A DNA stretch of 12,361 bases from Salpingoeca rosetta (GCA_033442325.1 JAWQFM010000002.1:2483693-2496053); one strand, 5' to 3'; positions 7,124 through 12,361 are shown, counted from the stretch's first letter. Program-made: numbers and translations. The notes: a model not told the origin generated them from the sequence alone.

Positions 7124-10100
7124 TCAGGTCATGTCACCGGCGTCGTCAAAATCGTCGTCGTCATCGTCATAATCCTGGGCGCGTGAACCCCCTCCATCAT
7201 CAACACTCGAACGTGCACCGGCATCTGTGAGCGCGCGCTGGACGGCATCAAACTCGTCCAATAACTGCTCGTCTCGGCCATCACCGCCAGCGTCATCGTC
7301 ATCACCATCATCATCGGCACCAGTCAAGAACGAGCTGTCCTCTTCGCGCAGCTGCTCCATCGGCTCAATCGTGCTCTGGCGGGCACTGGCAGGGCCCACG
7401 CCAATGTACGATCCGCGAGGCGGTGGCGCCATCGAATCACGCGGCGATACCGTGTCGCCAGCATCAAAGTCAAACGTCACATCCGCCTCATCAACAGACT
7501 CTGGACGAACATCCGGCCCATCATCGTCCACATCCATCACAGCCTGTGAAATGAGGTTTGAGATGGCGTCGTTTGGATCATCGTGGATGGGCGGCTGTGG
7601 TGGTGAGCGTGCAACCCTGCGCGCTTGCTCTTGTTCCGCCAAAACCAGATCACCCTCAGACCAGGAGCCCTTGGGTGTCTGCGGCTGCAGCGATGACCAT
7701 GCCGCAACAGGGTGTGCACGAAGTACCGTGTCCTGGTACTGGTGCCGTGCAGCTGCCTCCGCATCCGACCGCGCGTGATCATTACGACGCGACAAGCGAG
7801 TGAACAACAGCACAAAAATCAGCAGCGCAAAGAGACCCAGGTTGACACACCCAAGAATGACGGCCAGGTCTGCGGTGGATGCCGCTTCGTCCGTCTGTTT
7901 GGCTGTCTTGGACTGGGACGTCTGCAGGTTGCTTGATGTCTGGTTCAAAAGCGAGTTGAGCTCCTCGGTTGCCCGAAGCGCTTCCAAGCGCGCCGTCGCC
8001 AACTGCAGCTGCAACTCTTCCACCAGCGCAGTAAGGTTCTCCGTATCAATGTACACAGATGGCTGGAACGGCAGATCTTCTGGCGCGGGGAACGATGGGT
8101 CAGACAGCGTGGTGTTGAGGAGGTCAACTGCGTCATCACCAGTGAAGATGGCGCGGCGACGCCGGCTGGAACCACCCGACGACGTCGCAAGCACAAAAGT
8201 CACGTCCATACACACATCTGGCAGCAGCGCGCGCGCAAACCGCATGCGCGCAATCGACGTGCCCGAGGCAGAGAGCAGGTTGAGTTCCTGCGAGTCAGTG
8301 ATGTTCCACTGCGTTGGCTGAGCGAAGAAATCCTTCACCTGCTGCCGAAGCGTAGGAATCAGCGCACCAGCGTCCTCGTCCACAGAGCACATGCGCAGCG
8401 TAAGGGACGAGCAATTGGCCGTGTTGCAGTTGATGCCCGGGTCAAGCGTCAACAAGATGGTTCGGCCAAACAGCTCTTGCTCGTTGATCACGACGCGGTT
8501 GAGGATGTCTTCAAGGCGGTTGTCAATGCTTGTCACGTTGCCCTCCAGCACAGACTTGGTCTCGCTCAAACCAACAGCGATGGAACGCTCCGCCAGGGAG
8601 GCGCGGGCGGTTTCATCTGAAATGGAGCTCGCCAGCGACGTCTCCGTGGACTCTAGCGTCGACAGCAAGGCGCTGTCACTCGTGGTCACAACAGCAGCCA
8701 GCGTGCTCAGCTGGAAATCTTGCAGCGAAATGGCAGAGGAGAGCTCCGATGACAGAAGGTCTTCGGCATTCATTGCGCGCGAAAGCTCAGTCGACAGCTC
8801 GAGGGAGAAGCGCGACTCCAGGCTGTTTTCCGAGTTGGTGGCACGGGTGATCTCAAGCGTTAGCCGTGCCTCCGCTGCCGATACGGCAGACTCCAGTGAG
8901 TCATCGGCCATGGACACCGTGGAACGCACACTCGAGAACTCATCCTCAATTGCAAGAACGGTGGCAGCAGTGGACGATTCGTGCTTGGAAAGCTCCGATG
9001 AAATAAAAGATTCCGTGCTCACGGCACGGCTCGATTCAGACGAAATGAGAGAATCGAGCGTGTCCTCGGCGTTCATGGCACGTGCAACCTCTGCACTCAG
9101 GGCTGCACTCAATCGGCTTGACTCGGAGGAGACATCCGACTCCAACGACAACAACGACGCATCCACGACTTCAATATCACTCAACAAGCTCGCTTCCGTG
9201 GAGGCAGCCCGTTCATTCTCTGCAACAATCGAGCTGGACAACATGCGCTCAACGTCATTCAACTCAATGCTGTATTCAACTTCAACTGTTGAAATGTCTT
9301 CCTCAAGACTATATTCAGAGCTAATGGACCGCGACGTCTCGCTGCTCAGCTCGCTGCTCAGCGTGCTCGACAGGTGAGACTCCGTGCTGTCTGCCCGGCT
9401 CGTCTCCGTGCTCAGCTCAGTGCTCAGCGTGCTCGACAGGTGCGTCTCAGTGCTTGCCGCGCGCGAGTTCTCGCTGTTCAGAGAGCTAATGGACCGCGAC
9501 GTCTCGCTGCTCAGCTCGCTGCTCAGCGTGCTCGACAGGTGAGACTCCGTGCTGTCTGCCCGGCTCGTCTCCGTGCTCAGCTCAGTGCTCAGCGTGCTCG
9601 ACAGGTGCGTCTCAGTGCTTGCCGCGCGCGAGTTCTCGCTGTTCAGAGAGCTAATGGACCGCGACGTCTCGCTGCTCAGCTCGCTGCTCAGCGTGCTCGA
9701 CAGGTGAGACTCCGTGCTGTCTGCCCGGCTCGTCTCCGTGCTCAGCTCAGTGCTCAGCGTGCTCGACAGGTGCGTCTCAGTGCTTGCCGCACGGAACGTT
9801 TCCACACTAATGCTCACAGTCAAGCTGTTCTCAGCAGCCACGGCACGCGACGTCTCGCTGCTCAGCTCGCTGCTCAGCGTGCTCGACAGGTGAGACTCCG
9901 TGCTGCCTGCCCGGCTCGTCTCCGTGCTCAGCTCAGTGCTCAGCGTGCTCGACAGGTGCGTCTCCGTGCTTGCCGCGCGCGAGTTCTCGCTGTTCAGAGA
10001 GCTAATGGACCGCGACGTCTCGCTGCTCAGCTCGCTGCTCAGCGTGCTCGACAGGTGCGTCTCCGTGCTGCCTGCCCGGCTCGTCTCCGTGCTCAGCTCA

Positions 10101-12361
10101 GTGCTCAGCGTGCTCGACAGGTGCGTCTCAGTGCTCAAAGCACGGAACGTTTCCAAACTGATGCTCGCAGTAAGACTGTTCTCAGCAAGTTCAGCACGAG
10201 ATGTCTCGCTGCTCAGCTCGCTGCTCAGCGTGCTCGACAGGTGAGACTCCGTGCTTGCCGCGCGCGAGTTCTCGCTGTTCAGAGAGCTAATGGACCGCGA
10301 CGTCTCGCTGCTCAGCTCGCTGCTCAGCGTGCTCGACAGGTGCGTCTCCGTGCTGCCTGCCCGGCTCGTCTCCGTGCTCAGCTCAGTGCTCAGCGTGCTC
10401 GACAGGTGCGTCTCAGTGCTTGCCGCGCGCGAGTTCTCGCTGTTCAGAGAGCTAATGGACCGCGACGTCTCGCTGCTCAGCTCGCTGCTCAGCGTGCTCG
10501 ACAGGTGAGACTCCGTGCTGTCTGCCCGGCTCGTCTCCGTGCTCAGCTCAGTGCTCAGCGTGCTCGACAGGTGCGTCTCAGTGCTTGCCGCGCGCGAGTT
10601 CTCGCTGTTCAGAGAGCTAATGGACCGCGACGTCTCGCTGCTCATCTCGCTGCTCAGCGTGCTCGACAGGTGCGTCTCAGTGCTGCCTGCCCGGCTTCGT
10701 CTCCGTGCTCAGCTCAGTGCTCAGCGTGCTCGACAGGTGCGTCTCAGTGCTTGCCGCGCGCGAGTTCTCGCTGTTCAGAGAGCTAATGGACCGCGACGTC
10801 TCGCTGCTCAGCTCGCTGCTCAGCGTGCTCGACAGGTGAGTCTCCGTGCTGCCTGCCCGGCTCGTCTCCGTGCTCAGCTCAGTGCTCAGCGTGCTCGACA
10901 GGTGCGTCTCAGTGCTTGCCGCGCGCGAGTTCTCGCTGTTCAGAGAGCTAATGGACCGCGACGTCTCGCTGCTCAGCTCGCTGCTCAGCGTGCTCGACAG
11001 GTGAGACTCCGTGCTGTCTGCCCGGCTGGTCTCCGTGCTCGACAGGTGAGACTCCGTGCTGCCTGCCCGGCTCGCCTCCGTGCTCAGCTCGTTGGACAGC
11101 AGTGTCTCTGTGCTCACAGATCGCGACGTCTCGCTGCTCAACTCGGTGCTCAGCGTGCTTGACAGGTGCGTCTCCGTGCTTGCCGCGCGCGAGTTCTCGC
11201 TGTTCAGAGAGCTAATGGACCGCGACGTCTCGCTGCTCAGCTCGCTGCTCAGCGTGCTCGACAGGTGCGTCTCCGTGCTGCCTGCCCGGCTCGCCTCCGT
11301 GCTCAGCTCGTTGGACAGCAGTGTCTCTGTGCTCACAGAACGCGACGTCTCGCTGCTCAACTCGGTGCTCAGCGTGCTTGACAGGTGCGTCTCCGCGCTG
11401 CCTGCCCGGCTCGTCTCCGTGCTCAGCTCGCTGCTCAGCGTGCTCGACAGGTGCGTCTCAGTGCTTGCCGCGCGCGAGTTCTCGCTGTTCAGAGAGCTAA
11501 TGGACCGCGACGTCTCGCTGCTCAGCTCGCTGCTCAGCGTGCTCGACAGGTGAGACTCCGTGCTGTCTGCCCGGCTCGTCTCGCTGCTCAGCTCAGTGCT
11601 CAGCGTGCTCGACAGGTGCGTCTCAGTGCTTGCCGCGCGCGAGTTCTCGCTGTTCAGAGAGCTAATGGACCGCGACGTCTCGCTGCTCAGCTCGCTGCTC
11701 AGCGTGCTTGACAGGTGCGTCTCCGTGCTGCCTGCCCGGCTCGCCTCCGTGCTCAGCTCGTTGGACAGCAGTGTCTCTGTGCTCACAGATCGCGACGTCT
11801 CGCTGCTCAACTCGGTGCTCAGCGTGCTTGACAGGTGCGTCTCAGTGCTTGCCGCGCGCGAGTTCTCGCTGTTCAGAGAGCTAATGGACCGCGACGTCTC
11901 GCTGCTCAGCTCGCTGCTCAGCGTGCTCGACAGGTGCGTCTCCGTGCTGTCTGCCCGGCTCGTCTCCGTGCTCAGCTCAGTGCTCAGCGTGCTCGACAGG
12001 TGCGTCTCCGTGCTTGCCGCGCGCGAGTTCTCGCTGTTCAGAGAGCTAATGGACCGCGACGTCTCGCTGCTCAGCTCGCTGCTCAGCGTGCTTGACAGGT
12101 GCGTCTCCGTGCTGCCTGCCCGGCTCGCCTCCGTGCTCAGCTCGTTGGACAGCAGTGTCTCTGTGCTCACAGATCGCGACGTCTCGCTGCTCAACTCGGT
12201 GCTCAGCGTGCTTGACAGGTGCGTCTCAGTGCTTGCCGCGCGCGAGTTCTCGCTGTTCAGAGAGCTTATGGACCGCGACGTCTCGCTGCTCAGCTCGCTG
12301 CTCAGCGTGCTTGACAGTGCGTCTCCGTGCTGTCTGCCCGGCTCGCCTCCGTGCTCAGCTC
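7124..12361 (-). CDS. Giant single-pass (probably type I) cell-surface protein: Ser/Thr/Glu/Leu ExxRA-repeat stalk, Cys-containing domain with RRRR site, membrane-proximal coiled coil, TM helix (7867-7802), ~225-aa acidic tail. 5' end lies outside the window; two apparent 1-bp indels (10696/7 and ~12317)
   Basis: ORFs 7124-10645 and 10677-12194 carry the same repeat and become one frame when the extra T in ccggcttcgt (consensus ccggctcgt) is removed. TM LAVILGCVNLGLFALLIFVLLF is followed by the basic stop-transfer TRLSRR. Six N-glycosylation sequons (NVT, NCS, NIT, NTT, NLT, NQT) lie N-terminal of the TM. Stop TGA at 7126-7124. No introns or CA repeats over 5.2 kb. Confidence 0.85.
9310..12361 (-). 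repeat. Near-perfect coding minisatellite with 33-, 54- and 66-bp units in 165-bp and 219-bp higher-order repeats
   Basis: ctaatggacc recurs at 9321, 9486 and 9651 (period 165 = 11+22+22 aa). Above ~11060 an extra 18-aa unit, ETSRSVSTETLLSNELST, gives a 73-aa (219-bp) block. Confidence 0.97.

Follow-up and report, generated by a model that had tools for sequence, protein, structure and literature searches.

The window analyzed here is a 12,361-nucleotide (nt) stretch of Salpingoeca rosetta DNA (GCA_033442325.1 JAWQFM010000002.1:2483693-2496053). Read on the minus strand, from the window end at 12361 down to a stop codon at 7124-7126, it contains the C-terminal part of a predicted giant surface protein with a serine- and threonine-rich repeat array. 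The region is best explained as part of a gene without introns, at most its 3′ two-thirds, that encodes a type I membrane protein in a choanoflagellate-type genome. On balance we slightly favour a protein carrying a non-heptad, probably trimeric coiled-coil stalk, which would undergo a furin-like cut at the membrane-proximal sequence RRRR. The distinguished features are listed below in the direction of the gene, with lengths in amino acids (aa).

12318-12361, minus strand: repeat array in frame 0, which translates as ELSTEASRADSTETH and continues upstream past the window end
12317-12318, minus strand: -1 frame change, one C missing from 'cacctg'
10698-12316, minus strand: repeat array of ~539 aa in frame 2, an open frame with the 55-aa repeat
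10696-10697, minus strand: +1 frame change, an extra A ('acgagc' to 'acgaagc')
9323-10693, minus strand: repeat array of 457 aa in frame 0, running uninterrupted into the rest of the protein
8474-9322, minus strand: degenerate, predicted non-heptad helical repeats (283 aa, ExxRAxxAExxL units), aligning with both homologues
8165-8473, minus strand: membrane-proximal domain with four invariant Cys and the entry motif E-x-E-[LV]-[FY]-G-R (three-sequence alignments)
8153-8164, minus strand: RRRR, candidate proprotein-convertase site, invariant in all three family members
about 7934-8044, minus strand: predicted short coiled coil, L..VE.L.L.LA (conserved columns; AlphaFold2 helix, predicted local distance difference test (pLDDT) score 70-75)
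7802-7870, minus strand: predicted single transmembrane (TM) helix (Kyte-Doolittle 19-residue maximum 2.83; the sole segment above 1.6)
7127-7801, minus strand: predicted cytoplasmic tail of 225 aa, 24% Asp/Glu, with the motifs RAHPVxSW, RGSYIG[VI] (7400-7417) and EFxxVxxAL
7124-7126, minus strand: stop codon
6647-7123, minus strand: possible 3′ untranslated region (UTR), placed by a contig start in an RNA-like run (soft evidence)

The anatomy given by the original prediction (near-identical repeats, degenerate copies, a Cys domain, RRRR, a coiled coil, one TM helix and an acidic tail) was recovered in full, all of it on the minus strand. Position 7124, at which that prediction bounded the feature, is the first base of the stop codon. 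A Pro-containing linker lies between RRRR and the short coiled coil, and the sequence TRLSRR stands directly after the TM helix, which fits the positive-inside rule. Cys residues and NxS/T sites occur only N-terminal to this helix. The single TM segment, the basic residues that follow it and the Cys residues and sequons that precede it point to a type I topology. The coding sequence extends over at least 5.2 kb (window 7055-12361) without an intron, and none was seen in the homologue contig L001 either. Absence of introns over such a distance is believed to be unusual for an intron-rich protist genome.

Plus-strand open reading frames (ORFs) also run over the array (e.g. 9374-10786, up to 470 aa, RLRAQLSAQRARQV...). 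These were rejected as antisense by-products that are open only due to the repeat; it is the minus-strand frame that leads into the conserved module.

Membrane-proximal module and its relatives

A 296-aa membrane-proximal segment served as the query for phmmer, run exhaustively against 1.84 billion cluster representatives. Only two relatives were found, P0001 (695 aa, E 8e-24, 31% identity) and P0002 (734 aa, E 4e-16, 29% identity), each on an environmental contig (one JGI, one ENA). The P0002 contig (L001) carries an ERO1-like gene downstream on the same strand (L001:3174-3593), likewise intron-free, and the presence of this gene identifies the contig as eukaryotic genomic DNA. Both homologue contigs break off at the 5′ end within different Ser/Thr/Glu/Leu arrays of their own, which are built of ~18- and ~22-residue units. 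The array of P0002 extends upstream of its called start (L001:1-324) in 22-residue units, with one in-frame TAG where the others have Leu.

The window protein, P0001 and P0002 are collinear from the degenerate repeats to the C-terminus, and the C-terminal 730 aa share 29-34% identity with the two homologues, which are intact. Invariant or conserved in all three are E-x-E-[LV]-[FY]-G-R, the four Cys, VC[LM]D, RRRR, L..VE.L.L.LA and the TM helix, together with the tail motifs RAHPVxSW, TP..W, RGSYIG[VI] (which contains a YxxPhi-like YIGV) and EFxxVxxAL. A further motif, NPL[YF], is found in both homologues and not in the window protein.

No Pfam family at E <= 1 was found for SEA, vWD or NIDO-AMOP with the 1173-aa ORF described below or with the C-terminal 558 aa, the sole sub-threshold match being TMEM154 over the TM helix; the homologues gave TM noise only. 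PDB sequence searches of the stalk and of the module returned no matches at E <= 10, the Atlas match of the module was uninformative (0.77), and no matches to the family alignment were found among metagenome contigs and viral contigs. A word-based protein search with residues 700-1173 had no matches, probably because acidic and Ser-rich words dominated it. The exact 1173-aa ORF is absent from a 15-billion-protein collection, and no near-identical protein appeared in the phmmer scan. Judged by sequence, the C-terminal module defines a new and very narrow protist family of three members. The protein had been called uncharacterised, and for the module and tail this stands (two relatives only, and nothing in Pfam or the PDB), but not for the stalk repeat, which matches a phage tail-fibre family.

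The layout of class I viral fusion glycoproteins was considered and rejected. RRRR is present, but the 16 residues that follow it (AIFTGDDAVDLLNTTL) have a Kyte-Doolittle value of 0.62 and include three Asp. The layout fails because there is no fusion peptide and only one short coiled coil precedes the TM helix.

Stalk repeats and their likeness to viral fibres

Near-identical repeats occupy the window end to ~9323 (~1013 aa) and are followed by ~283 aa of degenerate copies. Tandem Repeats Finder gave a tandem period of 165 nt with 88-96% matches, that is, a 55-aa unit composed of five 11-mers: ETSRSISSLNS, ENSRAASTETH, LSSTLSTELST, ETSRADSTESH and LSSTLSSELSS. The 22-residue motif described originally is present as a sub-unit of this longer unit. 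The array consists of 35% Ser, 17% Thr, 13% Glu, 13% Leu and 1% Gly. It had been described as half Ser/Thr and free of Pro, and indeed Ser and Thr amount to 51%, while Pro is absent both from the 996 array residues analyzed and from the 283 degenerate ones (~1280 aa in all). Successive ExxR anchors are spaced by 22 (30 times), 11 (14 times), 18 (6 times) or 15 (once) residues, and each of these unit lengths is near a whole number of helical turns. The 22-mer contains a seam, T2-A5-T8-L12-L16-L20, whose 3-3-4-4-4-4 spacing has the density of a coiled-coil core, half of it Thr/Ala. Variable sites among the 22-residue units fall mostly at third codon positions (11, against 6 and 5 at the others).

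S-x-E triplets, the consensus of secretory-pathway casein kinases, number ~6 per 55-aa unit (114 in 996 aa), and by this match the rod could be heavily phosphorylated. NxS/T sequons are absent from the array (window 9323-12361).

The hydrophobic period of the array peaks at 3.67 residues, with a power of 8.0 where shuffled sequences have a maximum of 1.1 ± 0.2 (z = 34; none of 300 shuffles attained it), and that of the degenerate region at 3.61 (z = 7.5). The stalks of the homologues have an alpha-band peak at 3.59 (z = 5-6) despite their differing repeat sequences, and for L002 this is the best period. Within the array, hydrophobic residues share one phase at 11/3 across ~1000 aa; the phase resultant of Leu, Ile, Val, Met and Phe over 460-540 residues is 0.55 at 11/3 and 0.04 at 3.5. 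Such periodicity, in phase at 11/3 over many repeats and not at 3.5, is that of a hendecad coiled coil. The degenerate part prefers 3.6 (resultant 0.38). AlphaFold2, run as a monomer with a three-sequence alignment on two perfect units and the whole degenerate region, predicted helices at 2-224 and 229-392 with a mean pLDDT of 79 (74-82 across the perfect units). From the periodicity and these models, we consider it quite likely that the stalk is a helical rod. The original prediction of an alpha-helical array, distinct from a mucin domain rich in Pro, Thr and Ser (PTS), is supported by the zero Pro count, the 3.67 period, the 11/3 phase, the restricted unit lengths and the AlphaFold2 helix. 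The reach of ~190 nm likewise follows by arithmetic (~1296 visible residues at ~0.15 nm each), probably as a lower bound.

The 18-residue unit ExxRAxxAExxLxxxIxx is present in the degenerate region and in a few array units (e.g. EVARAMNAEDTLDSLISS and ETSRAELAENSLTASISL); two phage-like 18-mers, ETSRAELAENSLTASISL and ETSRAVAAENSLTVSISV, lie within 9323-10693. The PHROGs family phrog_13589, of unknown function, was matched by the array (E 6.5e-13) and by the degenerate part (E 6.2e-7), over only ~92-241 of its 1042 profile positions, which correspond to the repeat region. As far as these alignments go, the repeat is shared with phrog_13589 and the window protein itself is not a member of that family. 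The profile form of the word-based protein search returned only P0006 (L003:3462-5042), and not even P0001 or P0002. P0006 has nine EMSRAQAAEASLTSSVAS-type 18-mers (ExSRAQAAExSL) and an N-terminal '...DAVNKGYLD' motif. Its gene adjoins those of an Erv1/Alr sulfhydryl oxidase and a glycosyltransferase, neighbours by which the contig probably belongs to a giant virus. Among ~190-kb Vibrio phages, P0006 has matches that carry the annotation 'tail fiber protein', and one of these proteins contains six EISRAQSAESTLQTNIDN units.

A position matrix was built from 14 viral 18-residue units and scored against the window's own composition; it replaced an hmmsearch shuffle control, whose scores were driven negative by bias correction. 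Two window units reached ~20 bits (shuffle maximum 5.7) and the best degenerate unit 7.7 (shuffle maximum 4.0). In the Atlas, the cluster nearest to the degenerate region is viral (0.90). Comparison of the phage repeat with the PDB gave a single lead, to gp26, a tail needle that forms a trimeric coiled coil, and its E of 0.066 is not significant. Since phage fibres are homotrimers as a rule, a trimer is favoured for the stalk, and by this analogy a parallel homotrimer is most likely.

Integrity and expression of the gene

The array does not form one open reading frame; it is interrupted by frame changes at ~12317/12318 and ~10696/10697 that the original prediction does not mention. Literal translation from upstream meets a TGA at 12302-12304, while at 10696/10697 the literal reading gives ...TETKPGRQH and then a stop at 10677-10679; the longest literal ORF (7124-10645) comprises 1173 aa. 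Both frame changes are one-base length changes at 1-2-base homopolymers, their net shift is zero, and the remaining codons (~1750) are all open in the repeat frame. Because the one-base homopolymer events cancel, the other codons are open and the downstream part is conserved, a sequencing or assembly error is a likelier cause than a real lesion, and we regard it as probable.

Contigs of two runs from two studies match 7055-9346 exactly and without joints; the unique part is therefore real, intron-free DNA. The extent of the array is another matter. Relative to the unique flank, five repeat words had depths of 16, 28, 4.7, 9.3 and 7.9, against 4, 8, 2, 1 and 2 copies in the window, i.e. they are 2.4-9 times deeper than the window copy number predicts, the depths being rough. 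By this excess the genome holds roughly 3-4 times more repeat than the window, and the copy number of the array depends on the quality of the assembly. Three places are conceivable for the additional copies: sequence upstream of the window, a collapsed part of the assembly, or paralogues. In two runs, gaps remained in unique coding sequence that the index lists for them.

Each of the words sampled from 7124-9300 was present in all 20 runs found to contain the region, nine of which were guessed to be RNA. Runs came from eight studies, as would fit a laboratory organism. One RNA-like run (X14), with only 23 Mb of contigs, contains exact array contigs. In this run a contig starts exactly at 6647 and ends at 6940, and none is found at 6402-6500, where DNA-like runs have one. 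The pattern suggests a transcript with a 3′ UTR of ~480 nt.

Proposed working, alternatives and known systems

We propose that the extracellular stalk would be a very long alpha-helix built from 11-, 18- and 22-residue units, in which a Thr/Ala/Leu/Ile seam on one helix face, at 11/3 residues per turn, would give rise to a non-heptad (hendecad-type) coiled coil. The ancestral unit would be ExxRAxxAExxLxxxIxx, the unit from which the shafts of certain phage tail fibres and giant-virus-like fibres are built. Such a stalk would place the N-terminal end, which lies outside the window, at a distance of 190 nm or more from the membrane, and probably of several times that. Its base would comprise the conserved domain, predicted to be disulphide-bonded, the invariant RRRR and the short coiled coil. 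The conservation of RRRR and its position between the Cys domain and the coiled coil suggest that a furin/kexin-type convertase probably cuts there in the secretory pathway, after which the fibre may either stay attached non-covalently or be shed. Motifs of the acidic tail (the YxxPhi-like YIGV in RGSYIGV) may link the protein to sorting or cytoskeletal partners.

The stalk could instead belong to a membrane-tethered mucin analogue, disordered and densely O-glycosylated as a brush-like glycocalyx, in which the 11-residue period would be a by-product of repeat amplification. The Ser+Thr content of 51% would suit such a molecule, as would the low helix propensity of these residues and a layout (repeats, juxtamembrane domain with a cleavage site, TM helix, tail) that parallels MUC1-type mucins. 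Nevertheless we consider it unlikely. PTS mucin domains are Pro-rich and no Pro occurs here in ~1280 aa; the 11/3 seam stays in phase for ~1000 aa, and a period of 3.6 is found in the non-amplified degenerate region. An alpha-band period is also present in both homologues, with unrelated repeats, though the strongest in L001 is 2.27. Unit lengths are limited to 11, 15, 18 and 22, AlphaFold2 predicts helix (pLDDT 79), the stalk matches phage fibre shafts, and no SEA domain was found with Pfam. Vane and glycocalyx material of S. rosetta, reported as lectin-binding and proteinase-K resistant (PMC9671500), can be counted in favour of the mucin analogue. A beta-structured fibre, with the repeats folded into a trimeric beta-helix or beta-spiral like the shafts of many phage fibres and spikes, would be in keeping with the kinship to tail-fibre proteins and with a secondary spectral peak at ~2.2-2.3 residues, which is dominant in L001 with its alternating V-x-V-x-V. 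It seems highly improbable, given that the array has 1% Gly, 0% Pro and almost no turn formers, that the peak at 2.2 is the 11/5 harmonic of the 11-residue period, that AlphaFold2 gives helix only, that the viral 18-mer has an a/d-like 3-3-4-4-4 spacing, and that gp26, the only PDB lead and a weak one, is a coiled coil.

Two frame changes within 1.6 kb also raise the question whether the gene is dead or mis-assembled, i.e. whether they are real and mark a pseudogene in decay, or the array is an artefact of assembly, and the giant protein is never made. The absence of the exact 1173-aa ORF from the protein collection, the assembly gap elsewhere in the window, the disagreement between repeat-word depth and assembled copy number, and the in-frame TAG in the array of L001 are all compatible with this. 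We nonetheless hold it to be improbable. Some 1750 other codons are open in the repeat frame, and single-base homopolymer events of zero net effect are what read errors would give. The C-terminal 730 aa, including the tail motifs, are conserved with two intact homologues, variation among the 22-residue units is commonest at third codon positions, and RNA-like runs contain all sampled 7124-9300 words as well as exact array contigs.

Several observations weigh against the coiled-coil stalk protein that we favour. No start codon, head domain or signal peptide is visible within the window. The frame changes break the array, so that the protein read literally ends at 12302-12304, and among the sequencing-run contigs compared none was shown to bridge either frame-change site and there was no indel row. 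The evidence of expression comes from runs that were only guessed to be RNA. Ser and Thr have a low propensity for helix, and with half of its residues being of this kind the stalk monomer may be disordered; heavy O-glycosylation is possible. As a monomer run, the AlphaFold2 model of the stalk says nothing on oligomers and may over-predict helices in repeats, and that of the Cys module is unusable (pLDDT 43). The strongest period in the homologous array of L001, with its alternating Val, is 2.27. No direct match was obtained when the window sequence was compared with 50,697 phage records (tblastn), and for this reason shared ancestry of the motif and convergence are not separable. The R-hxxhE trimerization motif is defined as Arg(g)-h(a)-x-x-h(d)-Glu(e), in which h(a) is I/L/V/M and h(d) is L/I/V (PMC3653964). 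The window protein has its R...E spacing only (RAxxAE 6 times, RAx[ST][ST]E 34 times), and the strict motif was rejected because h is Ala, Ser or Thr.

Among known systems, phage tail fibres (phrog_13589; the 'tail fiber protein' WNO23741.1 of Vibrio phage pv27) and P0006 use the same repeat unit as the window protein, equal in length and in the spacing of hydrophobic residues; like it, they are fibrous shafts that connect an anchor with a distal domain. In contrast to them, the window protein is without a viral head or N-terminal anchor, its stalk exceeds theirs 50-100-fold in length and contains far more Ser/Thr, and its C-terminal TM anchor, in a eukaryotic cell, reverses the polarity. The trimeric autotransporter adhesins (YadA, BadA, NadA) follow the same head-stalk-anchor logic, with repetitive, length-variable stalks, and these are non-heptad (undecad/pentadecad) coiled coils with polar core residues, like the stalk proposed here; NadA3 is described as having undecad coiled coils (PMC6191539). 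They are, however, bacterial outer-membrane proteins with a beta-barrel anchor, whereas the window protein has a predicted eukaryotic TM helix and cytoplasmic tail, and no Pfam match to the YadA stalk, head or anchor domains was found in it. MUC1-type mucins, too, have a type I topology and a giant tandem array rich in Ser/Thr, followed by a membrane-proximal domain that contains a cleavage site and, beyond the membrane, by a short signalling tail. The window protein differs from them in lacking Pro, SEA, NIDO and AMOP, in having a polybasic site rather than the autocatalytic GSVVV, and in its helical periodicity. Of these systems, autotransporter adhesins and phage fibres are the nearest to it in function and MUC1-type mucins in layout, but it fails to show the defining features of all three alike. 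Tetrabrachion and other hendecad (11/3) stalks share the 11-residue period and form nearly straight, slightly right-handed bundles that serve as long surface stalks; tetrabrachion is tetrameric with a strongly hydrophobic core, whereas the core of the window stalk is half Thr/Ala.

Bacteria, phages and animal scavenger receptors all offer familiar examples of fibrous coiled-coil surface proteins. A non-heptad rod of micrometre scale that is rich in Ser/Thr and anchored by a TM helix in a close relative of animals would, if confirmed, be a new form of them. It would also offer a structural test case, with a core half Thr/Ala kept in phase at 11/3 over at least ~1000 residues, and a candidate gene for those extracellular filaments of choanoflagellates (vane, collar links, glycocalyx) for which the constituents are not known. 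The common 18-residue unit raises the question of exchange or convergence between the fibres of phages and giant viruses and the surface of a bacterivore. The flagellar vane is made of thin membrane-anchored filaments of unknown composition, which are proteinase K resistant and have no mastigoneme homologue (PMC9671500). That the protein, with its shaft of phage or giant-virus fibre type, is a structural subunit of surface filaments, those of the vane being the preferred candidate and collar or glycocalyx links an alternative, is a speculative and very improbable assignment. Under it, cleavage at RRRR would free the filaments to mesh with their neighbours, and the repeat-word depth would suggest a rod 3-4 times the visible 190 nm.

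Elsewhere in the window, an exon-like ORF at 1205-1828 on the plus strand matches dihydrouridine synthase (Pfam Dus, E 1.4e-18), and the gene seems to resume beyond an assembly gap of 466 bases (N run 2319-2784). The non-coding parts of 83-7037 abound in (AC)n/(CA)n and CT microsatellites (e.g. 1249-1406, 3626-3713, 4246-4362 and 5332-5414), an abundance that fits a eukaryote. (GT)n tracts in the same style mark the 3′ UTR of the homologue on L002, a hint that the organisms are related.

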